Assembly: GCA_963514005.1 (NCBI GenBank)
Contig: OY740798.1
Coordinates: forward strand, 51,832,001-51,896,000
Source: Raja brachyura
Lineage: Eukaryota
Direction of reading: 5' to 3'
Length of the DNA: 64,000 bases
Shown here: positions 4,216 to 47,796 of the stretch, in pieces
Position numbering within the stretch: position 1 is the stretch's first letter
Layout of the letters: every line of letters begins with the position of its first letter
Notes under the pieces: generated by a model
Database searches by the model: none
What the model saw: the letters and a program-made list of their open reading frames with translations, nothing else
Told to the model about the DNA's origin: nothing
Translations under genes and position numbers: made by a program

Positions 4216-4260
4216 GTTTTGGCAAAATAGAAAATGTTGTCAATGAAAATGTCGATAAAG
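4216..4260 (+). CDS. 45-nt phase-1 micro-exon, copy 1 (GFGKIENVVNENVDK)
   Basis: TTCTTTTTTATTCTGCAG acceptor and AAG/GTAAAA donor. Only phase 1 is stop-free, matching the phase of the terminal Ig exon. Confidence 0.72.
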
Positions 4261-4369
4261 GTAAAAGTCTTCATTTCCAATAGTTACTGTATTTTGAATG
4301 TTTGCTTCAAGTAGAAATTTAGATCATTACACATGATCCAAATGTTCTCAAAACACAAAGCATCTGGGT

Positions 4370-5685
4370 ATTCAATTATCTGGATATTCAAATTACTAGA
4401 AAATATAAATCTTTATTCAATGCAAACTATATGCCCTTACTTACTAAATTAAATGCTTTGATTACATTTTGGAAACACTATTGATGTCTTTAATAGGCAG
4501 AATAAATGCCATAAAAATGATTTTTCTGCCACAAATCTTATATCTATTTCAATCAATACCAATATATTGACCTAAATTTTTTTTAAAAACTTGACTCTGA
4601 TATCACATAGAAACATAGAAATTAGGTGCAGGAGTAGGCACCTTCGAGCCTGCACCGCCATTCAATATGATCATGGCTGATCATCCAACTACCTGCCTTC
4701 TCTCCATACCCCCTGATCCCCTTAGCCACAAGGGCCACATCTAACTCCCTCTTAAATATAGCCAATGAACTGGCCTCAACTACCCTCTGTGGCAGAGAGT
4801 TCCAGAGACACACCACTCTCTGTGTGAAAAAAGTCCTTCTCATCTCGGTCCTAAAGGATTTCCCCCTTATCCTTAAGCTGTGACCCCTTGTCCTGGACCT
4901 CCCCAACATCGGGAACAATCTTCCTGCATCTGGCCTGTCCAACCCCTTAAGAATTTTGTAAGTTTTTATAAGATCCCCTCTCAATCTCCTAAATTCTAGA
5001 GAGTATAAACCGAGTTTATACAGTCTTTGTTCATAAGACAGTCCTGACATCCCAGGAATCAGTCTGGTGAACCTTCTCTGCACTCCCTCTATGGCAATAA
5101 TGTCCTTCCTCAGATTTGGAGACCAGAACTGTACGCAATACTCCAGGTGTGGCCTCACCAAGACCCTATACAACTGAAGTAGAACCTCCCTGCTCCTATA
5201 CTCAAATCCTTTTGCTATGAAGCTATCACAATGATATCGCTATGATTGCTATCACAAATTTCATATGGGACTATAAGTACTTGTTGGACAATTCTGCCCA
5301 GCAGGTAGATTGGATAGCAATGGAGAGAGAGGACTGCTCTCCTTTTAATATAGGAGCGATCCTTCTCTCACCAATACAACTGAATAATATAATATACAAG
5401 AAAAATCCAATTATTCATCGTACAATACGAACGAGGAGACAAATAAAATCAACTTTCAAATTAAGAAATCTATCACGTCGCTCTCCTATTGTTAATAATC
5501 CGTCGTTTAAACCATCTACTGTCAATAAAATGTTTACACACTGGGAAAGAATAGAAATATTTTTTACAAAAGTATTTAAAACAGAAAAGAACCCCAATGC
5601 AGAATTGATTATCTTTGGAACAATGGAGACCGGCTCTGAGCTGACTTCGTTCCAAGAGAGTTTCCTTAACTATGGCTTAATAACG
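4370..5685 (+). mobile_element. L1/Tx1-like LINE ORF2 3' fragment, internally deleted (every full monomer); native 3' end retained only at ~36470-37470
   Basis: Peptides QILYLFQSIPIY..FFKKLDSDITNFIWDYK and DWIAMEREDCSPFNIGAILLSP...NPIIHRTIRT. The terminal copy continues ...FLKIWSPFIDLLQ. Confidence 0.75.
4608..5222 (-). mobile_element. CR1 LINE 3' fragment in monomer A (also ~12041-12655, ~19461-20075, ~26899-27513)
   Basis: LVRPHLEYCVQFWSP...RRLRGDLI...TRGH...RVVCLWNSLP; (ATAGAAAC)n tail; TATCACA duplicated on both sides; empty site present in monomer B. Confidence 0.93.
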
Positions 5686-5686
5686 A

Positions 5687-5860
5687 GAGGACAAGTTGGT
5701 CCAAAGGGCCTGTTTCCACACTGTATGACTACGACTCTGTCTTTGGGATGTAGGAAGAAACCCGCACGTTCACAGGGGGGGAACGTGCAAACGCCACACA
5801 GACAGCACCCGCTGGTCAGGATCGAAACCGGGTCTCTGGCGCCGCGCCACTGCGCCGACC
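5687..5860. mobile_element. tRNA-derived SINE fragments at the monomer junction
   Basis: AAGGGCCTGTTTCC tail followed by an antisense SINE head (GGTCAGGATCGAAACCGGGTCTCTGGCG). Confidence 0.7.
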
Positions 5861-7112
5861 CTTTCACTTCAAACTTTACACTAGATTTATTTGATTGTCT
5901 CTTTCACAACAAAGTTTCACGTTGAATAAATTAGTTTTATTTTTTTACTGGTGTTGAGAATAGATGATTTGGGATGTTCAGTTGTTTAAAATCAGCTTGG
6001 GTGAGACACTTAGTCAAAGATCACTGAAACAGGCCCTTCGGCCCAACTTGCCGTTGTCAACCAAGGTGCCCCATCTAAACTAGTCCCACCTGCCCGTGAT
6101 TGGCCCATTTCCATCAATCTATGCTTTTACTAAAACTCTCATCTTGACCACTTCCGGTCTGCGTTGTTATTAAATATGCGCAAAAACGATCCCCCATAGC
6201 GCTAACATTTTTCGCCACCTTACTCACCGTTCTCCTCTGCTGCAAGTCAAATAAGTTTTGTCCCGATCGGTGAAATATTATAAAAGTTATTGGTCTGTTA
6301 TTCGCCAGGAAGGCGACACCCCTTCCGGCACCTGCTGTCAATCACCGGCCGCGAGAATAAAGCTGAGGGAGCGTTGTGAGCAGAGTGCGAGCTGTGTTCT
6401 GTGTTCTACGAGCGGGGGCCCACACCACCCCTTCCCACATACACCCCCTCCCCTATCCTCACAACCCCCTCTCCTCTGCACCCCCCCACACCCCCCTCCC
6501 CTACACCCCACCTTCCCCTCAACCACCCCCTCCCCCACACTCCCTCCTACCACACACGCCCCTCCTCCCTACCAACCGCCCCTATTCACAAACCTCCCCT
6601 ACTCCCACCCCCACCATCCCCGTCTCCCCGTCCACCCCCCCCCCCCCCCCCCCCCCCCCACCCATGAGGTTGGAGGAGGTGCAGGTGAACCTCTGCCTCA
6701 GCTGGAAAGACTGCTTGGGTCCTTGGATGGAGTCGAGGGGGGAGGTAAAGCGACATTTGTAGCATTTCCTGTGGTTGCAAGGGAAAGTACCAGAGGAAGG
6801 GGGTGATTTGTGTGGGAAGGGACGAATTGACCAGGGAATTGGTTCAGGTAGTCCTTGCTTTCGCCATCCTTCCCGTCCCCTTCACAGCTCTCCCACAGCC
6901 TACTCTCTCTGCCTCTTCCTTTTTTTCCCCTCCCCACCGCCCCACATCAGTGTGAAGAAGGTCTCGACCCGAAACGTCCCCTATTCCTTCGCTCCATAGA
7001 TGTTGCCTCACCCGCTGAGTTTCTCCAGCATTTTTGTCTACCGTCGGTTTTTCCAGCATCTGCAGTTCCTTCTTAAACATCAGGTTTAATTAAGCTCTTT
7101 TTTATTCTGCAG

Positions 7113-7157
7113 GTTTTGGCAAAATAGAAAATGTTGTCAATGAAAATGTCGATAAAG
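7113..7157 (+). CDS. 45-nt micro-exon, copy 2
   Basis: Identical exon and splice sites. Confidence 0.7.
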
Positions 7158-8199
7158 GTAAAAGTCTTCATTTCCAATAGTTACTGTATTTTGAATGTTT
7201 GCTTCAAGTAGAAATTTAGATCATTACACATGATCCAAATGTTCTCAAAACACAAAGCATCTGGGTATTCAATTATCTGGATATTCAAATTACTAGAAAA
7301 TATAAATCTTTATTCAATGCAAACTATATGCCCTTACTTACTAAATTAAATGCTTTGATTACATTTTGGAAACACTATTGATGTCTTTAATAGGCAGAAT
7401 AAATGCCATAAAAATGATTTTTCTGCCACAAATCTTATATCTATTTCAATCAATACCAATATATTGACCTACATTTTTTTTTTAAACTTGACTCTGATAT
7501 CACAAATTTCATATGGGACTATAAGTACTTGTTGGACAATTCTGCCCAGCAGGTAGATTGGATAGCAATGGAGAGAGAGGACTGCTCTCCTTTTAATATA
7601 GGAGCGATCCTTCTCTCACCGATAAAACTGAATAATATAATATACAAGAAAAATCCAATTATTCATCGTACAATACGAACGAGGAGACAAATAAAATCAA
7701 CTTTCAAATTAAGAAATCTATCACGTCGCTCTCCTATTGTTAATAATCCGCCGTTTAAACCATCTACTGTCAATAAAATGTTTACACACTGGGAAAGAAT
7801 AGAAATATTTTTTACAAAAGTATTTAAAACAGAAAAGACCCCCATTGCAGAATTGATTATCTTTGGAACAATGGAGACCGGCTCTGAGCTGACTTTGTTC
7901 CAAGAGAGTTTCCTTAACTATGGCTTAATAACGAGAGGACAAGTTGGTCCAAAGGGCCTGTTTCCACACTGTATGACTACGACTCTGTCTTTGGGATGTA
8001 GGAAGAAACCCGCACGTTCACAGGGGGGGGAACGTGCAAACGCCACACAGACATCACCCGGTGGTCAGGATCGAAACCGGGTCTCTGGCGCTGCGCCGCT
8101 GCGCCGACCCTTTCACTTCAAACTTTACACTAGATTTATTTCATTGTCTCATTCACAACAAAGTTTCACGTTGAATAAATTAGTTTTATTTTTTTACTG

Positions 8200-10498
8200 T
8201 AGCAATGTTACAAAATTTTGAGATTTTAAAAATCAAGTCTGCAATTTATCCCATCAGATAAAGCATAAAAAGAAGTTGAATTTGACACCTAATTCACTTT
8301 CATATCTTCAGTATTAAGAAAATTATGGCCATTTTCATACTCGGAAATTAGCATCTTGTTCCCCATTGCCTTTCAATTGACTTAACTCAAAAGCTGTGAT
8401 CTGGAACAGTTAAAAGCCCATAACTTTCTTAAAAATTAAGAAAAGCAATGAAATTTTCAGTTATTATAGATTGAAGCATTCTGAAACAAATATTAAACAA
8501 TCTTACTTGGATGACCTGAAATTAAAGCATATAATTAGTTAGTTATCTAATTGTAGCTAATTACAAAATTCAATGAGTAGATCTAAACATTTATCCATTT
8601 CTTAAGAAAAGAAAAACTTTTTTTAAATTGCCTAAGTGTCCAAATAACATTCACACAATAATCCACAATATAACATAATTTTTAAATCTCATTTTCATGA
8701 ATTTCTGGGCCAAATGGAAGGAATTTAGTGTTTGATTCCTGTAAATTAATGGCCATTTAAATCAACTAGCGAGTGGGTTTTAGTGGAATGCGGTGAATTG
8801 GAACGTTGCGGTTCAGGCACGTGCCGTGAGTAATTACTCAGGGTAGGCACTCGTCCGCTTTGAAAAAAAAATTAAACCACGCATGCGCAATTTGTTCTCC
8901 CCGTTAAATAAATAAATAAATAAAAACGGTGACATTTCAATTTGCCCAAGGCTTCCTAGTCCTAGACCAATTGGGGAACAGTTCCTTTCACAGCGTGTGG
9001 AGAGTCTGTGCCAGGGGTAAAGTTGTGGGGAGGGCACGAGTATTGAGAAGGAGGGTGTCGGGGATACTGCCAGTAACTCACTCACCGCTACCGCAGCTCT
9101 CCGGGCGCGAAGCCACGCACTGTAGCTGGGGATAGAAGCAGCTCGGGGAGCTACGAGCGGCCACCGGGACCTGACAGCAGAACTGGCCGCCACTTCAGCG
9201 CCTTCTGCCGGCCCGCTCACCTTTGGCAGTGCTCTCCGTCGGAACACCTGTCACCTGCCGTTCGCCGACTTCGCTCATGTCAGCGGCTTCCTGCAAATCC
9301 TTAAATTCGCACAGCCCAGTAACCTCAATCGCGCTGTCGGAATTTAAGGACATGAGTGAGGCCAGCGAGCGGCAGGAGAGAGGTTTTTAGACGGAGAGCT
9401 GCCTGAGGTGAGCGACTGGCAGAAGGAGCTAAGGTGGCGGCTGGTTCCGCTGTCCGGCCCGGCGGCCGCTCAGCCACCCGAGCTAATTCTCTCTCTTCTC
9501 CCCCCCCCCCCGGCCTCAGAGCGGTGGCATCCCACGCCTCCGTGCAAGGAGCATCGCAAGTGGATGCTCCCGACCCCTCATTCATAACATTCGTGCCCTC
9601 CCCGCAACTTTACCCCGGGCCAGACTCCCCAAACGCTGTGAAAGAAGCGCTCCCCCCACCCACACACCCCGGGAAATACGGTATTTAAAAACGTAAACAC
9701 AAAATGTACTTACCACATTATTGGTACACGACAAACCATAGATGAAAACCCCGCCAAGAAACTTGCGCTGCGCATACGCATCAGTCTACTGCGCATGCGC
9801 AGTGCAGCAAAGGCAGAATTTCTGCTGCCTTCAGCCCTGCTTGAAACTGACGGCTTCAGGCAGTGCTGACGGCACGTGGGCTGCACAGAGCTTCCCGTGT
9901 TACAAGCGCTGCGGATGAAAGGCACGGAGAATTATGCCTACCTAAGAGATCGATCTTTTACATAGGCATAATTCTCCCATGCCTTTATTATTCATATTTA
10001 ATTATTACTATGTTATAATTTTAGTCAGGGTAGGCAGTGCCTACCTTGCCTACCCTGACGGCACGTGCCTGTTGCGGTTAGCGGTGAAGTCGGGAGGAAA
10101 AATACTGTTTTTTCATACATTTTTTTGGACCCCATTTCGCAACATGAAAAAGTTATTAAAGCCTCCCGAAAAACCAACTTTTAATATAAAAATAAACGAT
10201 TTACCTTTTTTTCTCCCCTACGCAAAATCCTTCCGGTTGTCTGTGCTCACGGCTTTTGAAGGTGATTTTTAAATTACTCTAGTTAATAAATAATTTAGAG
10301 TAATTTAAAAACACCTTCATTCATGAAATGTCGGAGCGATTTTTCTTCCGCAACGAAATTGCCCGACATTCATTGATTATCCCTGCCTGTGGAAAAACGG
10401 CACTTTAAGCCCGCCCCCCTCTGAAAGGCGCCAAAGTCACGCACACGGGGAGCGGCAGAACTGCAGCGCTGCTCAAGGTAAGTTTTGTAACATACCTA
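8200..10498. mobile_element. Non-autonomous TIR DNA element (~1.0 kb plus nested hAT); also 15623-17919, 23053-25352, 30486-32784 and a partial copy ending at 3070
   Basis: TAGCAATGTTACAAAA...TTTTGTAACATACCTA termini; TTTACTG duplicated; empty site at ~5940-5955. Confidence 0.8.
8814..10071. mobile_element. Non-autonomous hAT element; also 16237-17492, 23667-24925, 31100-32357 and a partial copy ending at 2643
   Basis: Perfect 14-bp TIRs CAGGCACGTGCCGT/ACGGCACGTGCCTG with an 8-bp TSD TTGCGGTT. Confidence 0.9.
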
Positions 10499-11648
10499 TT
10501 TACTGGTGTTTAGAATAGATGATTTGGGATGTTCAGTTGTTTAAAATCTGCTTGGGTGAGACACTTAGTCAAAGATCACTGAAACAGGCCCTTCGGCCCA
10601 ACTTGCCGTTGTCAACCAAGGTGCCCCATCTAAACTAGTCCCACCTGCCCGTGATTGGCCCATTTCCATCAATCTATGCTTTTACTAAAACTCTCATTTT
10701 GACCACTTCCGGTCTGCGTTGTAATTAAATATGCGCAAAAACGATCCCCCATAGCGCTAACATTTTTCGCCACCTTACTCACCGTTCTCCTCTGCTGCAA
10801 GTCAAATAAGTTTTGTCCCGATCGGTGAAATATTATAAAAGTTATTGGTCTGTTATTCGCCAGGACGGCGACACCCCTTCCGGCACCCACTGTCAATCAC
10901 CGGCCGCGAGAATAAAGCTGAGGGAGCGTTGTGAGCAGAGTGCGAGCTGTGTTCTGTGTTCTACGAGCGGGGGACCACACCACCCCTTCCCACATACACC
11001 CCCTCCCCTATCCCCACAACCCCCTCTCCTCTGCACCCCCCCACACCCCCCTCCCCTACACCCCACCTTCCCCTCAACCACCCCCTCCCCCACACTCCCT
11101 CCTACCACACACGCCCTCCTCCCTATCAACCACCCCCATCCACACACCACCCCTACTCCCACCCCCACCATCCCCCCTACCCCCCCCCCCCCCCCACCCA
11201 TGAGGTTGGAGGAGGTGCAGGTGAACCTCTGCCTCAGCTGGAAAGACTGCTTGGGTCCTTGGATGGAGTCGAGGGGGGAGGTAAAGCGACATTTGTAGCA
11301 TTTCCTGTGGTTGCAAGGGAAAGTACCAGAGGAAGGGGGTGATTTGTGTGGGAAGGGACGAATTGACCAGGGAATTGGTTCAGGTAGTCCTTGCTTTCGC
11401 CATCCTTCCCGTCCCCTTCACAGCTCTCCCACAGCCTACTCTCTCTGCCTCTTCCTTTTTTTCCCCTCCCCACCGCCCCACATCAGTGTGAAGAAGGTCT
11501 CGACCCGAAACGTCCCCTATTCCTTCGCTCCATAGATGTTGCCTCACCCGCTGAGTTTCTCCAGCATTTTTGTCTACCGTCGGTTTTTCCAGCATCTGCA
11601 GTTCCTTCTTAAACATCAGGTTTAATTAAGTTCTTTTTTATTCTGCAG

Positions 11649-11693
11649 GTTTTGGCAAAATAGAAAATGTTGTCAATGAAAATGTCGATAAAG
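11649..11693 (+). CDS. 45-nt micro-exon, copy 3
   Basis: Identical exon and splice sites. Confidence 0.7.
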
Positions 11694-14544
11694 GTAAAAG
11701 TCTTCATTTCCAATAGTTACTGTATTTTGAATGTTTGCTTCAAGTAGAAATTTAGATCATTACACATGATCCAAATGTTCTCAAAACACAAAGCATCTGG
11801 GTATTCAATTATCTGGATATTCAAATTACTAGAAAATATAAATCTTTATTCAATGCAAACTATATGCCCTTACTTACTAAATTAAATGCTTTGATTACAT
11901 TTTGGAAACACTATTGATGTCTTTAATAGGCAGAATAAATGCCATAAAAATGATTTTTCTGCCACAAATCTTATATCTATTTCAATCAATACCAATATAT
12001 TGACCTAAATTTTTTTTAAAAACTTGACTCTGATATCACATAGAAACATAGAAATTAGGTGCAGGAGTAGGCACCTTCGAGCCTGCACCGCCATTCAATA
12101 TGATCATGGCTGATCATCCAACTACCTGCCTTCTCTCCATACCCCCTGATCCCCTTAGCCACAAGGGCCACATCTAACTCCCTCTTAAATATAGCCAATG
12201 AACTGGCCTCAACTACCCTCTGTGGCAGAGAGTTCCAGAGACACACCACTCTCTGTGTGAAAAAAGTCCTTCTCATCTCGGTCCTAAAGGATTTCCCCCT
12301 TATCCTTAAGCTGTGACCCCTTGTCCTGGACCTCCCCAACATCGGGAACAATCTTCCTGCATCTGGCCTGTCCAACCCCTTAAGAATTTTGTAAGTTTTT
12401 ATAAGATCCCCTCTCAATCTCCTAAATTCTAGAGAGTATAAACCGAGTTTATACAGTCTTTGTTCATAAGACAGTCCTGACATCCCAGGAATCAGTCTGG
12501 TGAACCTTCTCTGCACTCCCTCTATGGCAATAATGTCCTTCCTCAGATTTGGAGACCAGAACTGTACGCAATACTCCAGGTGTGGCCTCACCAAGACCCT
12601 ATACAACTGAAGTAGAACCTCCCTGCTCCTATACTCAAATCCTTTTGCTATGAAGCTATCACAATGATATCGCTATGATTGCTATCACAAATTTCATATG
12701 GGACTATAAGTACTTGTTGGACAATTCTGCCCAGCAGGTAGATTGGATAGCAATGGAGAGAGAGGACTGCTCTCCTTTTAATATAGGAGCGATCCTTCTC
12801 TCACCAATACAACTGAATAATATAATATACAAGAAAAATCCAATTATTCATCGTACAATACGAACGAGGAGACAAATAAAATCAACTTTCAAATTAAGAA
12901 ATCTATCACGTCGCTCTCCTATTGTTAATAATCCGTCGTTTAAACCATCTACTGTCAATAAAATGTTTACACACTGGGAAAGAATAGAAATATTTTTTAC
13001 AAAAGTATTTAAAACAGAAAAGAACCCCAATGCAGAATTGATTATCTTTGGAACAATGGAGACCGGCTCTGAGCTGACTTCGTTCCAAGAGAGTTTCCTT
13101 AACTATGGCTTAATAACGAGAGGACAAGTTGGTCCAAAGGGCCTGTTTCCACACTGTATGACTACGACTCTGTCTTTGGGATGTAGGAAGAAACCCGCAC
13201 GTTCACAGGGGGGGAACGTGCAAACGCCACACAGACAGCACCCGCTGGTCAGGATCGAAACCGGGTCTCTGGCGCCGCGCCACTGCGCCGACCCTTTCAC
13301 TTCAAACTTTACACTAGATTTATTTGATTGTCTCTTTCACAACAAAGTTTCACGTTGAATAAATTAGTTTTATTTTTTTACTGGTGTTGAGAATAGATGA
13401 TTTGGGATGTTCAGTTGTTTAAAATCAGCTTGGGTGAGACACTTAGTCAAAGATCACTGAAACAGGCCCTTCGGCCCAACTTGCCGTTGTCAACCAAGGT
13501 GCCCCATCTAAACTAGTCCCACCTGCCCGTGATTGGCCCATTTCCATCAATCTATGCTTTTACTAAAACTCTCATCTTGACCACTTCCGGTCTGCGTTGT
13601 TATTAAATATGCGCAAAAACGATCCCCCATAGCGCTAACATTTTTCGCCACCTTACTCACTGTTCTCCTCTGCTGCAAGTCAAATAAGTTTTGTCCCGAT
13701 CGGTGAAATATTATAAAAGTTATTGGTCCGTTATTCGCCAGGAAGGCGACACCCCTTCCGGCACCTGCTGTCAATCACCGGCCGCGAGAATAAAGCTGAG
13801 GGAGCGTTGTGAGCAGAGTGCGAGCTGTGTTCTGTGTTCTACGAGCGGGGGCCCACACCACCCCTTCCCACATACACCCCCTCCCCTATCCTCACAACCC
13901 CCTCTCCTCTGCACCCCCCCACACCCCCCTCCCCTACACCCCACCTTCCCCTCAACCACCCCCTCCCCCACACTCCCTCCTACCACACACGCCCCTCCTC
14001 CCTACCAACCGCCCCTATTCACAAACCTCCCCTACTCCCACCCCCACCATCCCCGTCTCCCCGTCCACCCCCCCCCCCCCCCCCCCCCCCCACCCATGAG
14101 GTTGGAGGAGGTGCAGGTGAACCTCTGCCTCAGCTGGAAAGACTGCTTGGGTCCTTGGATGGAGTCGAGGGGGGAGGTAAAGCGACATTTGTAGCATTTC
14201 CTGTGGTTGCAAGGGAAAGTACCAGAGGAAGGGGGTGATTTGTGTGGGAAGGGACGAATTGACCAGGGAATTGGTTCAGGTAGTCCTTGCTTTCGCCATC
14301 CTTCCCGTCCCCTTCACAGCTCTCCCACAGCCTACTCTCTCTGCCTCTTCCTTTTTTTCCCCTCCCCACCGCCCCACATCAGTGTGAAGAAGGTCTCGAC
14401 CCGAAACGTCCCCTATTCCTTCGCTCCATAGATGTTGCCTCACCCGCTGAGTTTCTCCAGCATTTTTGTCTACCGTCGGTTTTTCCAGCATCTGCAGTTC
14501 CTTCTTAAACATCAGGTTTAATTAAGCTCTTTTTTATTCTGCAG

Positions 14545-14589
14545 GTTTTGGCAAAATAGAAAATGTTGTCAATGAAAATGTCGATAAAG
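14545..14589 (+). CDS. 45-nt micro-exon, copy 4
   Basis: Identical exon and splice sites. Confidence 0.7.
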
Positions 14590-17500
14590 GTAAAAGTCTT
14601 CATTTCCAATAGTTACTGTATTTTGAATGTTTGCTTCAAGTAGAAATTTAGATCATTACACATGATCCAAATGTTCTCAAAACACAAAGCATCTGGGTAT
14701 TCAATTATCTGGATATTCAAATTACTAGAAAATATAAATCTTTATTCAATGCAAACTATATGCCCTTACTTACTAAATTAAATGCTTTGATTACATTTTG
14801 GAAACACTATTGATGTCTTTAATAGGCAGAATAAATGCCATAAAAATGATTTTTCTGCCACAAATCTTATATCTATTTCAATCAATACCAATATATTGAC
14901 CTACATTTTTTTTTAAACTTGACTCTGATATCACAAATTTCATATGGGACTATAAGTACTTGTTGGACAATTCTGCCCAGCAGGTAGATTGGATAGCAAT
15001 GGAGAGAGAGGACTGCTCTCCTTTTAATATAGGAGCGATCCTTCTCTCACCGATAAAACTGAATAATATAATATACAAGAAAAATCCAATTATTCATCGT
15101 ACAATACGAACGAGGAGACAAATAAAATCAACTTTCAAATTAAGAAATCTATCACGTCGCTCTCCTATTGTTAATAATCCGCCGTTTAAACCATCTACTG
15201 TCAATAAAATGTTTACACACTGGGAAAGAATAGAAATATTTTTTACAAAAGTATTTAAAACAGAAAAGACCCCCATTGCAGAATTGATTATCTTTGGAAC
15301 AATGGAGACCGGCTCTGAGCTGACTTTGTTCCAAGAGAGTTTCCTTAACTATGGCTTAATAACGAGAGGACAAGTTGGTCCAAAGGGCCTGTTTCCACAC
15401 TGTATGACTACGACTCTGTCTTTGGGATGTAGGAAGAAACCCGCACGTTCACAGGGGGGGGAACGTGCAAACGCCACACAGACATCACCCGGTGGTCAGG
15501 ATCGAAACCGGGTCTCTGGCGCTGCGCCGACCCTTTCACTTCAAACTTTACACTAGATTTATTTCATTGTCTCATTCACAACAAAGTTTCACGTTGAATA
15601 AATTAGTTTTATTTTTTTACTGTAGCAATGTTACAAAATTTTGAGATTTTAAAAATCAAGTCTGCAATTTATCCCATCAGATAAAGCATAAAAAGAAGTT
15701 TAATTTGACACCTAATTCACTTTCATATCTTCAGTATTAAGAAAGCTATGGCCATTTTCATACTCGGAAATTAGCATCTTGTTCCCCATTGCCTTTCAAT
15801 TGACTTAACTCAAAAGCTGTGATCTGGAACAGTTAAAAGCCCATAACTTTCTTAAAAATTAAGAAAAGCAATGAAATTTTCAGTTATTATAGATTGAAGC
15901 ATTCTGAAACAAATATTAAACAATCTTACTTGGATGACCTGAAATTAAAGCATATAATTAGTTAGTTATCTAATTGTAGCTAATTACAAAATTCAATGAG
16001 TAGATCTAAACATTTATCCATTTCTTAAGAAAAGAAAAACTTTTTTTAAATTGCCTAAGTGTCCAAATAACATTCACACAATAATCCACAATATAACATA
16101 ATTTTTAAATCTCATTTTCATGAATTTCTGGGCCAAATGGAAGGAATTTAGTGTTTGATTCCTGTAAATTAATGGCCATTTAAATCAACTAGCGAGTGGG
16201 TTTTAGTGGAATGCGGTGAATTGGAACGTTGCGGTTCAGGCACGTGCCGTGAGTAATTACTCAGGGTAGGCACTCGTCCGCTTTAAAAAAAAAATTAAAC
16301 CACGCATGCGCAATTTGTTCTCCCCGTTAAATAAATAAATAAATAAAAACGGTGACATTTCAATTTGCCCAAGGCTTCCTAGTCCTAGACCAATTGGGGA
16401 ACAGTTCCTTTCACAGCGTGTGGAGAGTCTGTGCCAGGGGTAAAGTTGTGGGGAGGGCACGAGTATTGAGAAGGAGGGTGTCGGGGATACTGCCAGTAAC
16501 TCACTCACCGCTACCGCAGCTCTCCGGGCGCGAAGCCACGCACTGTAGCTGGGGATAGAAGCAGCTCGGGGAGCTACGAGCGGCCACCGGGACCTGACAG
16601 CAGAACTGGCCGCCACTTCAGCGCCTTCTGCCGGCCCGCTCACCTTTGGCAGTGCTCTCCGTCGGAACACCTGTCACCTGCCGTTCGCCAACTTCGCTCA
16701 TGTCAGCGGCTTCCTGCAAATCCTTAAATTCGCACAGCCCAGTAACCTCAATCGCGCTGTCGGAATTTAAGGACATGAGTGAGGCCAGCGAGCGGCAGGA
16801 GAGAGGTTTTTAGACGGAGAGCTGCCTGAGGTGAGCGACTGGCAGAAGGAGCTAAGGTGGCGGCTGGTTCCGCTGTCCGGCCCGGCGGCCGCTCAGCCAC
16901 CCGAGCTAATTCTCTCTCTTCCCCCCCCCCCCGGCCTCAGAGCGGTGGCATCCCACGCCTCCGTGCAAGGAGCATCGCAAGTGGATGCTCCCGACCCCTC
17001 ATTCATAACATTCGTGCCCTCCCCGCAACTTTACCCCGGGCCAGACTCCCCAAACGCTGTGAAAGAAGCGCTCCCCCCACCCACACACCCCGGGAAATAC
17101 AGTATTTAAAAACGTAAACACAAAATGTACTTACCACATTATTGGTACACGACAAAGCATAGATGAAAACCCCGCCAAGAAACTTGCGCTGCGCATACGC
17201 ATCAGTCTACTGCGCATGCGCAGTGCAGCAAAGGCAGAATTTCTGCTGCCTTCAGCCCTGCTTGAAACTGACGGCTTCAGGCAGTGCTGACGGCACGTGG
17301 GCTGCACAGAGCTTCCCGTGTTACAAGCACTGCGGATGAAAGGCACGGAGAATTATGCCTACCTAAGAGATCGATCTTTTACATAGGCATAATTCTCCCA
17401 TGCCTTTATTATTCATATTTAATTATTACTATGTTATAATTTTAGTCAGGGTAGGCAGTGCCTACCTTGCCTACCCTGACGGCACGTGCCTGTTGCGGTT

Positions 17501-19068
17501 AGCGGTGAAGTCGGGAGGAAAAATACTGTTTTTTCATACATTTTTTTGGACCCCATTTCGCAACATGAAAAAGTTATTAAAGCCTCCCGAAAAACCAACT
17601 TTTAATATAAAAATAAACGATTTACCTTTTTTTCTCCCCTACGCAAAATCCTTCCGGTTGTCTGTGCTCACGGCTTTTGAAGGTGATTTTTAAATTACTC
17701 TAGTTAATAAATAATTTAGAGTAATTTAAAAATACCTTCATTCATGAAATGTCGGAGCGATTTTTCTTCCGCAACAAAATTGCCCGACATTCATTGATTA
17801 TCCCTGCCTGTGGAAAAACGGCACTTTAAGCCCGCCCCCCTCTGAAAGGCGCCAAAGTCACGCACACGGGGAGCGGCAGAACTGCAGCGCTGCTCAAGGT
17901 AAGTTTTGTAACATACCTATTTACTGGTGTTTAGAATAGATGATTTGGGATGTTCAGTTGTTTAAAATCTGCTTGGGTGAGACACTTAGTCAAAGATCAC
18001 TGAAACAGGCCCTTCGGCCCAACTTGCCGTTGTCAACCAAGGTGCCCCATCTAAACTAGTCCCACCTGCCCGTGATTGGCCCATTTCCATCAATCTATGC
18101 TTTTACTAAAACTCTCATTTTGACCACTTCCGGTCTGCGTTGTAATTAAATATGCGCAAAAACGATCCCCCATAGCGCTAACATTTTTCGCCACCTTACT
18201 CACCGTTCTCCTCTGCTGCAAGTCAAATAAGTTTTGTCCCGATCGGTGAAATATTATAAAAGTTATTGGTCTGTTATTCGCCAGGACGGCGACACCCCTT
18301 CCGGCACCCACTGTCAATCACCGGCCGCGAGAATAAAGCTGAGGGAGCGTTGTGAGCAGAGTGCGAGCTGTGTTCTGTGTTCTACGAGCGGGGGACCACA
18401 CCACCCCTTCCCACATACACCCCCTCCCCTATCCCCACAACCCCCTCTCCTCTGCACCCCCCCACACCCCCCTCCCCTACACCCCACCTTCCCCTCAACC
18501 ACCCCCTCCCCCACACTCCCTCCTACCACACACGCCCTCCTCCCTATCAACCAGCCCCATCCACACACCACCCCTACTCCCACCCCCACCATCCCCCCTA
18601 CCCCCCCCCCCCCCCACCCATGAGGTTGGAGGAGGTGCAGGTGAACCTCTGCCTCAGCTGGAAAGACTGCTTGGGTCCTTGGATGGAGTCGAGGGGGGAG
18701 GTAAAGCGACATTTGTAGCATTTCCTGTGGTTGCAAGGGAAAGTACCAGAGGAAGGGGGTGATTTGTGTGGGAAGGGACGAATTGACCAGGGAATTGGTT
18801 CAGGTAGTCCTTGCTTTCGCCATCCTTCCCGTCCCCTTCACAGCTCTCCCACAGCCTACTCTCTCTGCCTCTTCCTTTTTTTCCCCTCCCCACCGCCCCA
18901 CATCAGTGTGAAGAAGGTCTCGACCCGAAACGTCCCCTATTCCTTCGCTCCATAGATGTTGCCTCACCCGCTGAGTTTCTCCAGCATTTTTGTCTACCGT
19001 TGGTTTTTCCAGCATCTGCAGTTCCTTCTTAAACATCAGGTTTAATTAAGTTCTTTTTTATTCTGCAG

Positions 19069-19113
19069 GTTTTGGCAAAATAGAAAATGTTGTCAATGAA
19101 AATGTCGATAAAG
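19069..19113 (+). CDS. 45-nt micro-exon, copy 5
   Basis: Identical exon and splice sites. Confidence 0.7.
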
Positions 19114-21966: not shown

Positions 21967-22011
21967 GTTTTGGCAAAATAGAAAATGTTGTCAATGAAAA
22001 TGTCGATAAAG
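21967..22011 (+). CDS. 45-nt micro-exon, copy 6
   Basis: Identical exon and splice sites. Confidence 0.7.
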
Positions 22012-25000: not shown

Positions 25001-26506
25001 AAAAAGTTATTAAAGCCTCCCGAAAAACCAACTTTTAATATAAAAATAAACGATTTACCTTTTTTTCTCCCCTACGCAAAATCCTTCCGGTTGTCTGTGC
25101 TCACGGCTTTTGAAGGTGATTTTTAAATTACTCTAGTTAATAAATAATTTAGAGTAATTTAAAAATACCTTCATTCATGAAATGTCGGAGCGATTTTTCT
25201 TCCGCAACGAAATTGCCCGACATTCATTGATTATCCCTGCCTGTGGAAAAACGGCACTTTAAGCCCGCCCCCCTCTGAAAGGCGCCAAAGTCACGCACAC
25301 GGGGAGCGGCAGAACTGCAGCGCTGCTCAAGGTAAGTTTTGTAACATACCTATTTACTGGTGTTTAGAATAGATGATTTGGGATGTTCAGTTGTTTAAAA
25401 TCTGCTTGGGTGAGACACTTAGTCAAAGATCACTGAAACAGGCCCTTCGGCCCAACTTGCCGTTGTCAACCAAGGTGCCCCATCTAAACTAGTCCCACCT
25501 GCCCGTGATTGGCCCATTTCCATCAATCTATGCTTTTACTAAAACTCTCATTTTGACCACTTCCGGTCTGCGTTGTAATTAAATATGCGCAAAAACGATC
25601 CCCCATAGCGCTAACATTTTTCGCCACCTTACTCACCGTTCTCCTCTGCTGCAAGTCAAATAAGTTTTGTCCCGATCGGTGAAATATTATAAAAGTTATT
25701 GGTCTGTTATTCGCCAGGACGGCGACACCCCTTCCGGCACCCACTGTCAATCACCGGCCGCGAGAATAAAGCTGAGGGAGCGTTGTGAGCAGAGTGCGAG
25801 CTGTGTTCTGTGTTCTACGAGCGGGGGACCACACCACCCCTTCCCACATACACCCCCTCCCCTATCCCCACAACCCCCTCTCCTCTGCACCCCCCCACAC
25901 CCCCCTCCCCTACACCCCACCTTCCCCTCAACCACCCCCTCCCCCACACTCCCTCCTACCACACACGCCCCTCCTCCCTATCAACCACCCCCATCCACAC
26001 ACCACCCCTACTCCCACCCCCACCATCCCCCCTACCCCCCCCCCCCCCCCCCCACCCATGAGGTTGGAGGAGGTGCAGGTGAACCTCTGCCTCAGCTGGA
26101 AAGACTGCTTGGGTCCTTGGATGGAGTCGAGGGGGGAGGTAAAGCGACATTTGTAGCCTTTCCTGTGGTTGCAAGGGAAAGTACCAGAGGAAGGGGGTGA
26201 TTTGTGTGGGAAGGGACGAATTGACCAGGGAATTGGTTCAGGTAGTCCTTGCTTGCGCCATCCTTCCCGTCCCCTTCACAGCTCTCCCACAGCCTACTCT
26301 CTCTGCCTCTTCCTTTTTTTCCCCTCCCCACCGCCCCACATCAGTGTGAAGAAGGTCTCGACCCGAAACGTCCCCTATTCCTTCGCTCCATAGATGTTGC
26401 CTCACCCGCTGAGTTTCTCCAGCATTTTTGTCTACCGTCGGTTTTTCCAGCATCTGCAGTTCCTTCTTAAACATCAGGTTTAATTAAGTTCTTTTTTATT
26501 CTGCAG

Positions 26507-28915: not shown

Positions 28916-28946
<31 letters not shown>

Positions 28947-29399
28947 ACCCATGAGGTTGGAGGAGGTGCAGGTGAACCTCTGCCTCAGCTGGAAAGACTG
29001 CTTGGGTCCTTGGATGGAGTCGAGGGGGGAGGTAAAGCGACATTTGTAGCATTTCCTGTGGTTGCAAGGGAAAGTACCAGAGGAAGGGGGTGATTTGTGT
29101 GGGAAGGGACGAATTGACCAGGGAATTGGTTCAGGTAGTCCTTGCTTTCGCCATCCTTCCCGTCCCCTTCACAGCTCTCCCACAGCCTACTCTCTCTGCC
29201 TCTTCCTTTTTTTCCCCTCCCCACCGCCCCACATCAGTGTGAAGAAGGTCTCGACCCGAAACGTCCCCTATTCCTTCGCTCCATAGATGTTGCCTCACCC
29301 GCTGAGTTTCTCCAGCATTTTTGTCTACCGTCGGTTTTTCCAGCATCTGCAGTTCCTTCTTAAACATCAGGTTTAATTAAGCTCTTTTTTATTCTGCAG

Positions 29400-29444
29400 G
29401 TTTTGGCAAAATAGAAAATGTTGTCAATGAAAATGTCGATAAAG
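29400..29444 (+). CDS. 45-nt micro-exon, copy 8
   Basis: Identical exon and splice sites. Confidence 0.7.
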
Positions 29445-32400: not shown

Positions 32401-35400
32401 ATACATTTTTTTGGACCCCATTTCGCAACATGAAAAAGTTATTAAAGCCTCCCGAAAAACCAACTTTTAATATAAAAATAAACGATTTACCTTTTTTTCT
32501 CCCCTACGCAAAATCCTTCCGGTTGTCTGTGCTCACGGCTTTTGAAGGTGATTTTTAAATTACTCTAGTTAATAAATAATTTAGAGTAATTTAAAAATAC
32601 CTTCATTCATGAAATGTCGGAGCGATTTTTCTTCCGCAACGAAATTGCCCGACATTCATTGATTATCCCTGCCTGTGGAAAAACGGCACTTTAAGCCCGC
32701 CCCCCTCTGAAAGGCGCCAAAGTCACGCACACGGGGAGCGGCAGAACTGCAGCGCTGCTCAAGGTAAGTTTTGTAACATACCTATTTACTGGTGTTTAGA
32801 ATAGATGATTTGGGATGTTCAGTTGTTTAAAATCTGCTTGGGTGAGACACTTAGTCAAAGATCACTGAAACAGGCCCTTCGGCCCAACTTGCCGTTGTCA
32901 ACCAAGGTGCCCCATCTAAACTAGTCCCACCTGCCCGTGATTGGCCCATTTCCATCAATCTATGCTTTTACTAAAACTCTCATTTTGACCACTTCCGGTC
33001 TGCGTTGTAATTAAATATGCGCAAAAACGATCCCCCATAGCGCTAACATTTTTCGCCACCTTACTCACCGTTCTCCTCTGCTGCAAGTCAAATAAGTTTT
33101 GTCCCGATCGGTGAAATATTATAAAAGTTATTGGTCTGTTATTCGCCAGGACGGCGACACCCCTTCCGGCACCCACTGTCAATCACCGGCCGCGAGAATA
33201 AAGCTGAGGGAGCGTTGTGAGCAGAGTGCGAGCTGTGTTCTGTGTTCTACGAGCGGGGGACCACACCACCCCTTCCCACATACACCCCCTCCCCTATCCC
33301 CACAACCCCCTCTCCTCTGCACCCCCCCACACCCCCCTCCCCTACACCCCACCTTCCCCTCAACCACCCCCTCCCCCACACTCCCTCCTACCACACACGC
33401 CCCTCCTCCCTATCAACCACCCCCATCCACACACCACCCCTACTCCCACCCCCACCATCCCCCCTACCCCCCCCCCCCCCCCCCACCCATGAGGTTGGAG
33501 GAGGTGCAGGTGAACCTCTGCCTCAGCTGGAAAGACTACTTGGGTCCTTGGATGGAGTCGAGGGGGAAGGTAAAGCGACATTTGTAGCATTTCCTGTGGT
33601 TGCAAGGGAAAGTACCAGAGGAAGGGGGTGATTTGTGTAGGAAGGGGCGAATTGACCAGGGAATTGGTTCAGGTAGTCCTTGCTTTCGCCATCCTTCCCA
33701 TCCCCTTCACAGAGGACAAGTTGGTCCAAAGGGCCTGTTTCCACACTGTATGACTACGACTCTGTCTTTGGCATGTAGGAAGAAACCCGCACGTTCACAG
33801 GGGGGGAACGTGCAAACGCCACACAGACAGCACCCGGTGGTCAGGATCAAAACCGGGTCTCTGGCGCCACGCCACTGCGCCGACCCTTTCACTTCAAACT
33901 TTACACTAGATTTATTTGATTGTCTCTTTCACAACAAAGTTTCACGTTGAATAAATTAGTTTTATTTTTTTACTGGTGTTGAGAATAGATGATTTGGGAT
34001 GTTCAGTTGTTTAAAATCAGCTTGGGTGAGACACTTAGTCAAAGATCACTGAAACAGGCCCTTCGGCCCAACTTGCCGTTGTCAACCAAGGTGCCCCATC
34101 TAAACTAGTCCCACCTGCCCGTGATTGGCCCATTTCCATCAATCTATGCTTTTACTAAAACTCTCATCTTGACCACTTCCGGTCTGCGTTGTTATTAAAT
34201 ATGCGCAAAAACGATCCCCCATAGCGCTAACATTTTTCGCCACCTTACTCACCGTTCTCCTCTGCTGCAAGTCAAATAAGTTTTGTCCCGATCGGTGAAA
34301 TATTATAAAAGTTATTGGTCTGTTATTCGCCAGGAAGGCGACACCCCTTCCGGCACCTGCTGTCAATCACCGGCCGCGAGAATAAAGCTGAGGGAGCGTT
34401 GTGAGCAGAGTGCGAGCTGTGTTCTGTGTTCTACGAGCGGGGGCCCACACCACCGCTTCCCACATACACCCCCTCCCCTATCCTCACAACCCCCTCTCCT
34501 CTGCACCCCCCCACACCCCCCTCCCTTACACCCCACCTTCCCCTCAACCACCCCCTCCCCCACACTCCCTCCTACCACACACGCCCCTCCTCCCTACCAA
34601 CCGCCCCCATTCACAAACCTCCCCTACTCCCACCCCCACCATCCCCGTCTCCCCGTCCACCCCCCCCCCCCCCCCCCCCCACCCATGAGGTTGGAGGAGG
34701 TGCAGGTGAACCTCTGCCTCAGCTGGAAAGACTACTTGGGTCCTTGGATGGAGTCGAGGGGGAAGGTAAAGCGACATTTGTAGCATTTCCTGTGGTTGCA
34801 AGGGAAAGTACCAGAGGAAGGGGGTGATTTGTGTAGGAAGGGGCGAATTGACCAGGGAATTGGTTCAGGTAGTCCTTGCTTTCGCCATCCTTCCCATCCC
34901 CTTCACAGAGGACAAGTTGGTCCAAAGGGCCTGTTTCCACACTGTATGACTACGACTCTGTCTTTGGCATGTAGGAAGAAACCCGCACGTTCACAGGGGG
35001 GGAACGTGCAAACGCCACACAGACAGCAACCGGTGGTCAGGATCAAAACCGGGTCTCTGGCGCTGCGCCACTGCGCCGACCCTTTCACTTCAAACTTTAC
35101 ACTAGATTTATTTGATTGTCTCTTTCACAACAAAGTTTCACGTTGAATAAATTAGTTTTATTTTTTTACTGGTGTTGAGAATAGATGATTTGGGATGTTC
35201 AGTTGTTTAAAATCTGCTTGGGTGAGACACTTAATCAAAGATCACTGAAACAGGCCCTTCGGCCCAACTTGCCGTTGTCAACCAAGGTGCCCCATCTAAA
35301 CTAGTCCCACCTGCCCGTGATTGGCCCATTTCCATCAATCTATGCTTTTACTAAAACTCTCATCTTGACCACTTCCGGTCTGCGTTGTAATTAAATATGC

Positions 35401-36315
35401 TCAAAAACGATCCCCCATAGCGCTAACATTTTTCGCCACCTTACTCACCGTTCTCTGCTGCAAGTCAAATAGGTTTTGTCCCGATTGGTGAAATATTATA
35501 AAAGTTATTGGTCTGTTATTCGCCAGGACGGCGACACCCCTTCCGGCACTCGCTGTCAATCACCGGCCGCGAGAATAAAGCTGAGGGAGCGTTGTGAGCA
35601 GAGTGCGAGCTGTGTTCTGTGTTCTACGAGCGGGGGCCCACACCACCGCTTCCCACATACACCCCCTCCCCTATCCCCACAACCCCCTCTCCTCTGCACC
35701 CCCCCCCCCCCACACCCCCCTCCCCTACACCCCACCTTCCCCTCAACCACCCCCTCCCCCACACTCCCTCCTACCACACACGCCCCTCCTCACTACCACA
35801 CCCCCCCCATCCACACACCTCCCCTACTCCCACCCCCACCATCCCCCGTACCCCCCCACCCCCCCCCCCCCCCCACCCATGAGGTTGGAGGAGGTGCAGG
35901 TAAACCTCTGCCTCTGCTTGGGTCCTTGGATGGAGTCGAGGGGGGAGGTAAAGCGACATTTGTAGCATTTCCTGTGGTTGCAAGGGAAAGTACCAGAGGA
36001 AGGGGGTGATTTGTGTGGGAAGGGACGAATTGACCAGGGAATTGGTTCAGGTAGTCCTTGCTTTCGCCATCCTTCCCGTCCCCTTCACAGCTCTCCCACA
36101 GCCTACTCTCTCTGCCTCTTCCTTTTTTTCCCCTCCCCACCGCCCCACATCAGTGTGAAGAAGGTCTCGACCCGAAACGTCCCCTATTCCTTCGCTCCAT
36201 AGATGTTGCCTCACCCGCTGAGTTTCTCCAGCATTTTTGTCTACCGTCGGTTTTTCCAGCATCTGCAGTTCCTTCTTAAACATCAGGTTTAATTAAGCTC
36301 TTTTTTATTCTGCAG

Positions 36316-36360
36316 GTTTTGGCAAAATAGAAAATGTTGTCAATGAAAATGTCGATAAAG
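36316..36360 (+). CDS. 45-nt micro-exon, copy 9 (terminal monomer)
   Basis: Identical exon and splice sites. Confidence 0.72.
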
Positions 36361-37714
36361 GTAAAAGTCTTCATTTCCAATAGTTACTGTATTTTGAATG
36401 TTTGCTTCAAGTAGAAATTTAGATCATTACACATGATCCAAATGTTCTCAAAACACAAAGCATCTGGGTATTCAATTATCTGGATATTCAAATTACTAGA
36501 AAATATAAATCTTTATTCAATGCAAACTATATGCCCTTACTTACTAAATTAAATGCTTTGATTACATTTTGGAAACACTATTGATGTCTTTAATAGGCAG
36601 AATAAATGCCATAAAAATGATTTTTCTGCCACAAATCTTATATCTATTTCAATCAATACCAATATATTGACCTACATTTTTTTTTTAAACTTGACTCTGA
36701 TATCACAAATTTCATATGGGACTATAAGTACTTGTTGGACAATTCTGCCCAGCAGGTAGATTGGATAGCAATGGAGAGAGAGGACTGCTCTCCTTTTAAT
36801 ATAGGAGCGATCCTTCTCTCACCGATAAAACTGAATAATATAATATACAAGAAAAATCCAATTATTCATCGTACAATACGAACGAGGAGACAAATAAAAT
36901 CAACTTTCAAATTAAGAAATCTATCACGTCGCTCTCCTATTGTTAATAATCCGCCGTTTAAACCATCTACTGTCGATAAAATGTTTACACACTGGGAAAG
37001 AATAGAAATATTTTTTACAAAAGTATTTAAAACAGAAAAGAACCCCAATGCAGAATTGATTATCTTTGGAACAATGGAGACCGGCTCTGAGCTGACTTCG
37101 TTCCAAGAGAGTTTCCTTAACTATGGCTTAATAACGACAAAAAAACATATTAAAATTCTGTAAAATGCACCAACACCAACGCTTAAAATGTGGATTTCAA
37201 ACATGTCTGAATTGTTACACCTAGATGATATGAGATTCGTCCAAGCAGGCAAATCAGACCAATTCTTAAAGATTTGGTCTCCCTTTATTGATTTATTACA
37301 AGCACATGGTGCAACATAATCCTGAAAATAAACTGTTTCAGAAGCGGGTGAGGGGGGCGCAAAGATATGAAGTAGGTACATCCCTTCCATTTTATCTTCC
37401 TTTTATTATCCTTTTTTTATATCTCTCCTTTCTCCCTTTTTCTTGTACTTTTCATGAACTATCACTTCAGTTCTTTAAAATCTGCTTGGGTGAGACACAT
37501 AGTCATAGTCATAGATCATGGAAAAAGGCCCTTCGGCCCAACTTGTCCTTGTCAACCAAGATGCCCCATCTAAACTAGTCCCACCTGCCCACGATTGGCC
37601 CATATCCCTCTAAACCTATCCTATCCATGTTCCTGCCCAAGTGTTTAGAAATGAGTTTAATACTCTGACTTTGGAAGTGGCAATTTGATTTGACTAATGT
37701 CAGGCTTAATTAAG

Positions 37715-40976: not shown

Positions 40977-41009
40977 ATAATGGCAAAGTAGAAAATGTTG
41001 TCACTGAAG
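40977..41009 (+). CDS. 33-nt phase-1 micro-exon (DNGKVENVVTE), older paralog of the 45-nt exon
   Basis: GACTAAT branch-like motif, CTTTTTTATTCTTCAG acceptor and AAG/GTAAAA donor. The other two phases contain stops. About 100 bp of downstream intron is shared with the 45-nt exon. Confidence 0.72.
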
Positions 41010-45800: not shown

Positions 45801-46117
45801 ATACTGAGATTAGATTACACACAAGTGGACTCTATTTACTAATTAGGTGACTTCTGAAGGCAATTGGTTGCACTGGATTTTATTTAGGGGTATCAGAGTA
45901 AAAAGGGGCTGAATACCTTTGCACGCCACACTTTTCAGTTTTTTATATGTAAAAAAATTTGAAAACCATGTATCATTTTCCTTCCACTTCACAATTATGC
46001 ACCACTTTAGCGTTGGTCTATCACATAAATTCCCAATAAAATACATTTACGTTTGTGGTTGTAACATGACAAAATGTGGAAAAGTTCAAGGGGTATGAAA
46101 ACTTTTGCAAGCCACTG
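42889..46117 (-). mobile_element. Tc1-like transposon, disrupted, inserted into a SINE
   Basis: Long TIRs (CAGTGGCTTGCAAAAG...), TA TSD, transposase with GRP HTH linker, WSDETK, FQQDNDPKH and WPSQSPDLNP, frameshifted near 45340. Confidence 0.95.
43055..44912 (+). mobile_element. CR1 LINE nested in Tc1
   Basis: KSPGPD, NYRPVSL, QHGF, YMDFSRAFDKV, KYADDTK, RRLRGDLI; (GTTATATG)n tail. Confidence 0.95.
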
Positions 46118-46484
46118 TAAGTCTATGCTGACCAGTAAACACCCGTACACTAGTTCTATCCATTACGCTAGGGACAATTTACATCAAGGCAATTAACCTA
46201 CAAACGTGCACATCTTTGGAGTACGGGAGGAAACAGGAGCACCCAGATAAAATCCACGTGGTCACGGGGAGAATGTATGAACTCCATACAGTCAGCACCC
46301 ATAGTCCCGATCGAACCCAGGTCTCTGGCGCTGTAAGGCAGCAACTCTACCGCTATGCCACAATGTTGTCCTGAAACTGCTATTTGAAGGATTGTGATGA
46401 ATCTTTTGAAGATCATATGTTATTCTATATGCATGATTTTCCATATCCACCCAAATGCAACTATTTAGATGGTAAAAATAGATT

Positions 46485-47165
46485 TAGGTTTATTATTGTC
46501 ATGTGTACCAAGGTATAGTATTAAGCTTTATTTTGCATGCTATCCAAGCAGATCCGATATCCCGTACATATATACAATCAGTTGAAACAGAAATAAAACA
46601 GATAGAGTAAAGGGGAAGATACAGAGTGCAGGATATAGTTCTCAGCATTGTAGCCCATCAGTTACAGAGACAAAGTCCAATGTCTACGATACGGCAGAGG
46701 TGAATCAGATAGTGCCCTAGCTTATGGAAGGACTGTTCATAAACCTGATAACAGAGGGGAAGAAGCTGCTCCTGAGTGGTGGTGTGTCCCTTCAAGCTTC
46801 TGTACCTTCTCCATGACAGAAGCAGGGAGAGAAAGGAATTGCCGGGGCGGGACATGTCTTTGATTATGTTGGCTGCTTTCCCGAGGCACTGTGAAGTGTC
46901 GATGGAGTTGATAGTCTGTGTGATGGACTGGGCTACATCTCCATCTCTCTGCAATATTGTGCGGTCTTGAGCAGAGCAGTTCCCAAACGAAGCTGTGATG
47001 CAAACGGTTAGTATGTTTTCTCCAGTGCATCTGCAGAAGTCTGCAAGGTGACATACCAAATCTCCTCAGTCTCCTCAGGAAGTAGAGGTGTTGGTGTGCC
47101 TTCTTGGCTGTCGCATCAATGTGGTTGGTCCACGACAGGTTATTGGTTATATTAGCGACTATAGT
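46485..47165 (-). mobile_element. Rex/Babar- or L2-like LINE 3' fragment
   Basis: NNLSWTNHIDATAKKAHQHLYFLRRLRRFG, ENILTVCITASFGNCS. Confidence 0.75.
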
Positions 47166-47494
47166 CATTTACTTTAAACATTGGAATTGGTGAATCTGTG
47201 GAATTTATTGCCACAGGCGGCAGTGGAGGCTAAGTCATTGGGTATTTTTAAAGCAGAGATTGATGGATTTGTGATACGCAAGGGTACCAAAAGGTTACGG
47301 GGAGAAGGCATGAGAATGGGATTGAGAGAGCCATGATTGGATGATGTAGTAGACTCAATGGGCTGAATGGCCTAACTCTGCTCCTATGTGTTATGGTCTT
47401 ATGTTTGGATTAAAATAAGTTGATTATGAGTATCAATAACCAGTGACTGTCATTATGGGTTTTACATTATTTACTATAAATGATATTCCAACAG

Positions 47495-47796
47495 AAGCGT
47501 TGAAGGTGGTCTCAAAGATAACATGCCTTACAGAGAAACCTAAGGCTGGGCACCCTGCAATGCTGTCCTGTAATGTTCGAGGCGCAGCCATAGAAAACGC
47601 CCATATCATCTGGTACAAAAATACTTACCCTTTTGATGAATATCGGTATGTTACAAACACGCCATTTGAAAATGAATTTGGTTTCACTACGACTTTAACT
47701 TACACACCAAAGGAAACAGATGGCAATCATATCCAAGTTTTCATTGATGTTAACCTGGAAGAACATGTTAGAGATTTCACTTTGATATTAAGTTGA
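47495..47796 (+). CDS. Terminal coding exon: atypical Ig-like (C-type) domain of an Ig-superfamily gene starting left of the window
   Basis: TTCCAACAG phase-1 acceptor; EALKVVSKITC...AMLSCNVRG...IIWYKN...FTTTLTYTPKETDGNHIQVFIDV...FTLILS*; non-repetitive sequence; AATAAA follows. Confidence 0.75.

Follow-up and report, generated by a model that had tools for sequence, protein, structure and literature searches.

Can a kilobase-scale tandem repeat made of transposon fragments multiply a coding exon and change the length of a protein in fixed steps? This question is raised by a stretch of 64,000 nucleotides (nt) from the skate Raja brachyura (contig OY740798.1, positions 51,832,001 to 51,896,000 of the forward strand; hereafter the window), in which nine copies of a single 45-nt segment recur along an array lying upstream of an exon that encodes an immunoglobulin (Ig) domain. 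Judged from its sequence and from comparison with other skates, the window probably contains the 3′ portion of an Ig-superfamily gene resembling B7-H6, in which an array of symmetric cassette micro-exons encodes a variable spacer. A preliminary description of this DNA had already proposed an exon amplifier working in 15-residue steps within an Ig-superfamily gene; comparison with related skates supported this part of the proposal, but not the optional exon that was attached to it (see below).

Micro-exon copies and the terminal Ig exon

Direct reading of the window found the 45-nt segment to be identical at all nine sites (9/9). Each copy is preceded by ttttttattctgcag, a pyrimidine tract ending in CAG, and followed by gtaaaag, and the same letters were read at all nine positions for which identical segments with AG/GT flanks had been reported. 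The copies are:

4216..4260, + strand: micro-exon copy 1 (A type), 45 nt, phase 1-1, encodes (G)FGKIENVVNENVDK
7113..7157, + strand: micro-exon copy 2 (B type)
11649..11693, + strand: micro-exon copy 3 (A type)
14545..14589, + strand: micro-exon copy 4 (B type)
19069..19113, + strand: micro-exon copy 5 (A type)
21967..22011, + strand: micro-exon copy 6 (B type)
26507..26551, + strand: micro-exon copy 7 (A type)
29400..29444, + strand: micro-exon copy 8 (B type)
36316..36360, + strand: micro-exon copy 9, in a third-type monomer whose exon-proximal 785 bp are those of the B type

Spacings from exon to exon were 2897, 4536, 2896, 4524, 2898, 4540, 2893 and 6916 nt. A 22-nt core pattern, allowing up to three mismatches, matched only the nine exons and one further site at 40982, with no matches expected from 100 shuffles. 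Phase 1 was the sole open frame of the exon, the other two being closed by a TAG and a TGA, as the preliminary description had stated; the first two bases finish a codon and one base remains at the 3′ end. The same open phase is common to the nine copies and to two further features downstream, a 33-nt relative of the exon at 40977 and the terminal Ig exon at 47495, and here too the earlier account held. Its remark that open reading frame (ORF) finders overlook exons this short is true, yet trivial. The downstream features are:

40977..41009, + strand: older 33-nt unit, encodes (D)NGKVENVVTE
47495..47796, + strand: terminal exon, encodes a C1-like Ig domain that lacks the F-strand cysteine and ends in LILS-stop
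47890..47895, + strand: AATAAA polyadenylation-like signal, 94 nt past the stop

The terminal exon comprises 99 codons that are open to a TGA in the phase of the micro-exons. Using phmmer, it matched the extreme C-terminus (the last ~98 residues) of proteins of 750-1300 residues, with a best E value of 5e-52. The closest matches were proteins annotated in RefSeq as "uncharacterized protein", namely LOC116984368 (Amblyraja radiata), LOC129705966 (Leucoraja erinacea) and LOC144602191 (Rhinoraja longicauda), and more distant matches came from rays, a shark, coelacanth, lungfish and a frog. A literature search found no paper on this protein family. Identity of the terminal domain was 84% to Amblyraja and 83% to both Leucoraja and Rhinoraja; for reference, the corresponding values were 98% between Amblyraja and Leucoraja and 80% between Rhinoraja and Amblyraja. 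Values of 83-84% would be compatible with a close paralogue or with the orthologue from a different lineage of skates. The domain retains the AHIIWY...YPFDE...TNTPFEN...GFTT.LTYTPK motifs and the exact C-terminus of the family, and its AlphaFold2 model (pLDDT 93) adopts an Ig fold nearest to the C1 domains of major histocompatibility complex (MHC) class II and beta-2-microglobulin. The F-strand cysteine, which is kept in more distant homologues, is absent from all the batoid sequences compared, so that its loss is a trait of the family and not a sign of decay.

Among solved structures, human B7-H6 gave the best match (E = 1e-36) to the V-C1 ectodomain found in the Amblyraja orthologue; the likeness to B7-H6 rests on this orthologue, the window gene's own ectodomain lying outside the window. 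The same ectodomain supports the earlier suggestion of a probable immune gene. Members of the family have an N-terminal V-C1 ectodomain, a transmembrane segment and a chain of C1-like domains. When the orthologues were searched against the window with tblastn, this gene was matched at its terminal exon only, the other matches being V and C1 exons that belong to the next gene; as none lay upstream of the array, the 5′ exons of the gene must lie left of the window.

Linker units in other skates and rays

The preliminary description had also called for a comparison of exon number in related skates. Directly before the same terminal Ig domain, the orthologues of Amblyraja, Leucoraja and Rhinoraja carry three, five and eight homologous units, respectively, each of 15-16 residues with the motif xGKxENxVNExxDx. 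A multi-unit linker is therefore already present, unremarked, in the RefSeq models of related skates. The linkers, including that of a stingray, are arranged as follows:

Amblyraja, longest model: DYGKKENDVNEDADE, DYGKKENDVNEKVDE, DYGKKENDVNEDADE, then DNGKVENDVSEEVNEE; one isoform of 1271 residues and two of 1256, with a different unit missing in each
Leucoraja, longest model: five units, K and N types alternating, then DNGKVENDVSEEVNKE; isoforms of 1303, 1288 and 1273 residues
Rhinoraja, longest model: eight units forming four dimers of two alternating types, leading directly to (E)ALKVVSKITC; isoforms of 1226, 1210, 1225 and 1224 residues
Hemitrygon (stingray): unrelated-looking 15-residue units with the same kind of isoform ladder

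Isoforms of the orthologues differ by exactly one unit and some by one residue at unit borders; in Rhinoraja, the positions of the single-residue differences coincide precisely with the unit borders and the last junction. Such one-unit ladders together with one-residue changes at the borders are the expected product of separate cassette exons. In general, RefSeq alternative isoforms rest on transcript alignments. The terminal acceptor of the window is a tandem CAG/AAG (47490-47497), which would yield a one-residue alternative like those of Rhinoraja.

The units of the orthologues could also be traced in the window itself. When all six frames of the window were scanned, matches to orthologue units were found at the ten claimed exons only (the nine micro-exons and the 33-nt unit), with none in 20 shuffles, and these ten follow the order and phase of the orthologue linker. 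The window unit (G)FGKIENVVNENVDK agrees with one Rhinoraja unit at 10/14 body positions. These results bear on the idea that the 45-nt segments are open by chance and merely happen to lie between splice-like sequences of a repeat. Short open segments flanked by AG and GT are common in any genome, but the units of the orthologues match these sites alone, and do so in the right order, strand and phase upstream of a homologous terminal exon. We regard the likelihood of chance frames as practically negligible.

Compared with the three, five and eight units of the skate models, the window contains 9 + 1 copies, nine of them identical, and the alternation of two unit types in Rhinoraja mirrors the two-exon higher-order repeat of the window. 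Mean identity between units was 1.00, 0.92, 0.79 and 0.75 within species and 0.57-0.75 between species, the value between Amblyraja and Leucoraja tying with the lowest within-species value (0.75). Since identity within species is equal to or greater than that between species, the units evolve in concert. The last unit, which stands outside the array, can still be recognised as orthologous in the window, Amblyraja and Leucoraja.

An optional exon encoding VSRKRKVSS (42752-42778), placed by the preliminary description before the terminal Ig domain, was rejected: its donor is good, but its acceptor is poor, and no orthologue has a counterpart of it. Separately, when isoform X6 of Hemitrygon akajei was compared with a second protein, one isoform proved to skip the transmembrane segment (...LTVEV/PPKITG...). 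Everything that otherwise follows the membrane in such an isoform (C1-like chain, linker and terminal domain) might then be secreted instead of lying in the cytoplasm.

Anatomy and homogenisation of the array

Self-alignment of the window resolved the array and its edges:

2502..33712, + strand: higher-order tandem repeat of ~7.43-kb units
33711..37137, + strand: irregular right end of the array, with a truncated exonless monomer (33711-34908) followed by the third-type monomer that carries the ninth exon
1..2501, − strand: retroelement adjoining the array, gag-like and reverse transcriptase (RT)-like; "DIRS-like" is the putative label given to it by the preliminary description

Approximately 4.2 higher-order units are arranged head-to-tail, starting at 2502, 9930, 17351, 24784 and 32216 (the last partial), with an identity of 99.6% between units. 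Each consists of two monomers, A (~2.9 kb) and B (~4.5 kb), with one exon per monomer. The two share a common core of 1.5 kb that is 97% identical (3071-4607 versus 5944-7504) and differ by a 0.64-kb fragment of a long interspersed nuclear element (LINE) tail and by an extra segment of 2.3 kb. The exon lies within a non-repeat island of ~170 bp with transposon fragments on either side. On the right, the array of ~7.43-kb units ends in a truncated A-core (32785-33712), after which comes the exonless monomer. On the left, homology ends abruptly at 2501/2502, inside a palindrome and beside the 5′ end of the minus-strand retroelement, whose gag-like ORF (577-2337) encodes 586 residues; beyond it, an RT-like region with the motif IDLQDAYYTVP crosses the left edge of the window. 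The further copies that the preliminary description expected to the left of this retroelement would therefore fall outside the window, and no continuation of the array is visible within it.

Both truncated monomers (32785-33712 and 33969-34908) break ~226 nt 5′ of the expected exon. The breakpoint adjoins a C-rich tract of variable length in which the ORFs read as poly-proline (equivalents at 3385-3990 and 6258-6887), and this tract is a likely hotspot for unequal exchange.

The segment at 40977 is, on sequence grounds, a true paralogue of the 45-nt exon, as positions 40951-41109 are 87% identical to the exon and its flank and have lost 12 nt in frame. In Amblyraja and Leucoraja, the segment corresponds to the last linker unit (DNGKVENDVSE...); it matches the Amblyraja unit at 8/10 positions and is 15 nt shorter than its 48-nt skate counterpart. 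Taken together with the anatomy of the array, the 87% identity of this paralogue indicates that repeat age rises towards the 3′ end, from the young dimer array through the ninth copy to the 33-nt unit.

Exon and paralogue differ by five substitutions in 33 nt, 5/5 of which change an amino acid, and the 100 nt of downstream flank (41010-41109 versus 4261-4360) differ by two (98% identical). Conservation of this 100-nt intron flank might reflect either a splicing element within the intron or a tract of conversion. The predicted RNA fold of the exon with this flank was no better than that of shuffled sequences (z = 0.40), and a structured RNA splicing element was dropped as a candidate on this result.

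Around the exon, substitutions between monomer types avoid a tract of 785 bp, reaching from −400 to +385 (3816-4600 and equivalents). Only 4/19 substitutions between A and B fell inside this tract (P = 0.005), and none of the 19 between B and the ninth copy did so (P = 6e−7). Such a pattern suggests gene conversion, or recent descent from a common copy, over a tract far wider than the exon.

These features also speak to whether the locus might be an inactive duplicate of a B7-H6-like gene (its 3′ part only, or a pseudogene), or the length of the array an artefact of assembly. The upstream exons lie outside the window, a retroelement adjoins the array and some repeat units are identical over 1.5 kb, and these points speak for one or the other. 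However, all 99 codons of the terminal exon are intact, with the family motifs and the exact C-terminus kept; the repeat units carry private substitutions and differ in length; and multi-unit linkers are present in the independent assemblies of three skates. We consider both a dead duplicate and a spurious array quite improbable.

Readings of the array and comparison with known systems

The arrangement would be explained as follows. On the + strand, phase-1 cassette exons of 45 nt, each contributing one unit of 15 residues, would encode the spacer that separates the C-terminal Ig domain from the last of the C1-like domains. A block of intron, exon and intron, made up of the ~170-bp island and its flanking transposon fragments, was probably duplicated in tandem, and the duplicates would then have diverged into the two monomer types A and B. 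The A+B dimer would subsequently have been amplified as a 7.4-kb unit, most likely by unequal crossing-over between long identical units, giving the nine identical exon copies followed by the older 33-nt unit and the terminal exon. As each copy keeps its acceptor, donor and frame, the gain, loss or skipping of copies shifts the length of the spacer in 15-residue steps without a frameshift. Over evolutionary time such changes do occur, since the number of units differs among four skate lineages. By extension, the micro-exon copies are predicted to be spliced in R. brachyura, with several or all nine entering the mRNA, and the length of the array would be expected to vary among individuals.

Several observations weigh against a spliced, functional array. 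Reads of this genome from four runs were compared, at a likeness of at least 90, with positions 36250-42249 of the window (the ninth exon and the 33-nt unit). Among the read joints listed, none fell at an exon, and the table was flooded by contigs derived from transposons. No run containing the terminal exon was recorded as RNA. Run X17 contained a 0.93 share of the terminal-exon words, which is no evidence of expression; neither this run nor X20 can be called RNA, because all four runs cover every bin and these two give unique contigs from introns. The donor of the 45-nt exon (AAG/GTAAAA) is moderate only, and the isoforms of the orthologues are RefSeq predictions. The window unit is much less acidic than the units of the orthologues. 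Given that homogenisation extends over ~785 bp, the identity of the nine exons is no sign of selection on the exon alone. When compared with the 33-nt copy, the exon shows lower conservation than the 100 nt of intron downstream of it, although this contrast is marginal (P about 0.05 by our rough estimate) and nothing is drawn from it. Finally, with the 5′ exons outside the window, an inactive duplicate retains the small probability given to it above.

Many of these points would be accommodated by a recent, neutral amplification within a large intron, in which most copies are skipped and the mRNA uses one or two of them, or the 33-nt unit only. The lack of RNA evidence for the locus, a homogenised tract far wider than the exon and the loss from the window unit of most acidic residues of the orthologues are all consistent with such an origin, as is the ease with which units are skipped in the isoforms of the orthologues. 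Yet splice signals and frame are identical and intact in every copy, leaving the copies indistinguishable to the spliceosome, and the longest orthologue models include all three, five or eight of their modelled units. On balance, we regard neutral amplification with general skipping as unlikely, and favour an array of cassette exons encoding a variable spacer.

A more far-reaching version of the cassette-exon reading can be put forward tentatively. The array might be a fast-evolving molecular ruler in a family of B7-H6-like ligands, reset independently in each skate lineage (three, five, eight, and ten or more units), perhaps polymorphic within species and tuned by exon skipping, and paralogues in the same cluster may carry arrays of their own. 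In that case, how far the conserved terminal Ig domain reaches, or how it is spaced, would vary between individuals and between cells.

Two mammalian genes offer precedents. Each repeated exon of the IgG3 hinge is 45 nt long and encodes 15 residues. In IGHG3, as here, repeated exons of ~45 nt form a spacer between Ig domains. IgG3 repeats are rich in proline and cysteine and form interchain disulfides, whereas the window unit FGKIENVVNENVDK contains neither cysteine nor proline; the Rhinoraja units, unlike that of the window, have one cysteine each. The period of the IgG3 repeat is a few hundred bases, compared with 2.9-4.5 kb here, within a 7.4-kb unit of transposon fragments. The number of IgG3 hinge-exon repeats differs between alleles and alters both spacer length and function (PMC7899677). 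The second precedent is KIV-2 of LPA, an intragenic, exon-bearing repeat of 5.6 kb whose copy number sets the size of the protein, with >40 isoforms (PMC6314250). Both loci have a kilobase-scale intragenic repeat with complete in-frame exons. In LPA, two exons per unit encode a whole folded domain, whereas one micro-exon encodes a 15-residue piece of linker here; and polymorphism is proven for LPA, whereas for the present family there are only the counts between species (3, 5, 8 and 9+1). The locus combines a hinge-like micro-exon with a kilobase-scale higher-order repeat, and is of a kind already known from LPA KIV-2 and the IgG3 hinge. Human B7-H6 (NCR3LG1) itself is without the post-membrane Ig chain, the repeat linker and the terminal Ig domain.

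The locus would provide a clean non-mammalian case of a kilobase-scale repeat that multiplies a micro-exon, in a family related to a ligand of natural killer cells, B7-H6. Spacer length differs among related skates (three, five, eight and at least ten units), and the locus illustrates how a tiny exon can pass through repeated amplification and homogenisation within introns full of transposons. The family it points to is uncharacterised and conserved among vertebrates, and its linker and terminal domain merit functional study. Gene annotation will mis-model loci of this sort unless long-read cDNA is available.

Further along the window, the next gene is another B7-H6-like member, represented by a V and a C1 exon (60440-60865 and 61899-62300, + strand), and its V-C1 region is 34-48% identical to that of the skate and ray orthologues. 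With this second member at 60.4-62.3 kb, the locus is a tandem gene cluster. Between the terminal exon and this gene, a G-rich minisatellite (57336-57602) contains ~8 copies of a 23-nt unit, with overlapping periods of 30, 53 and 69 nt.

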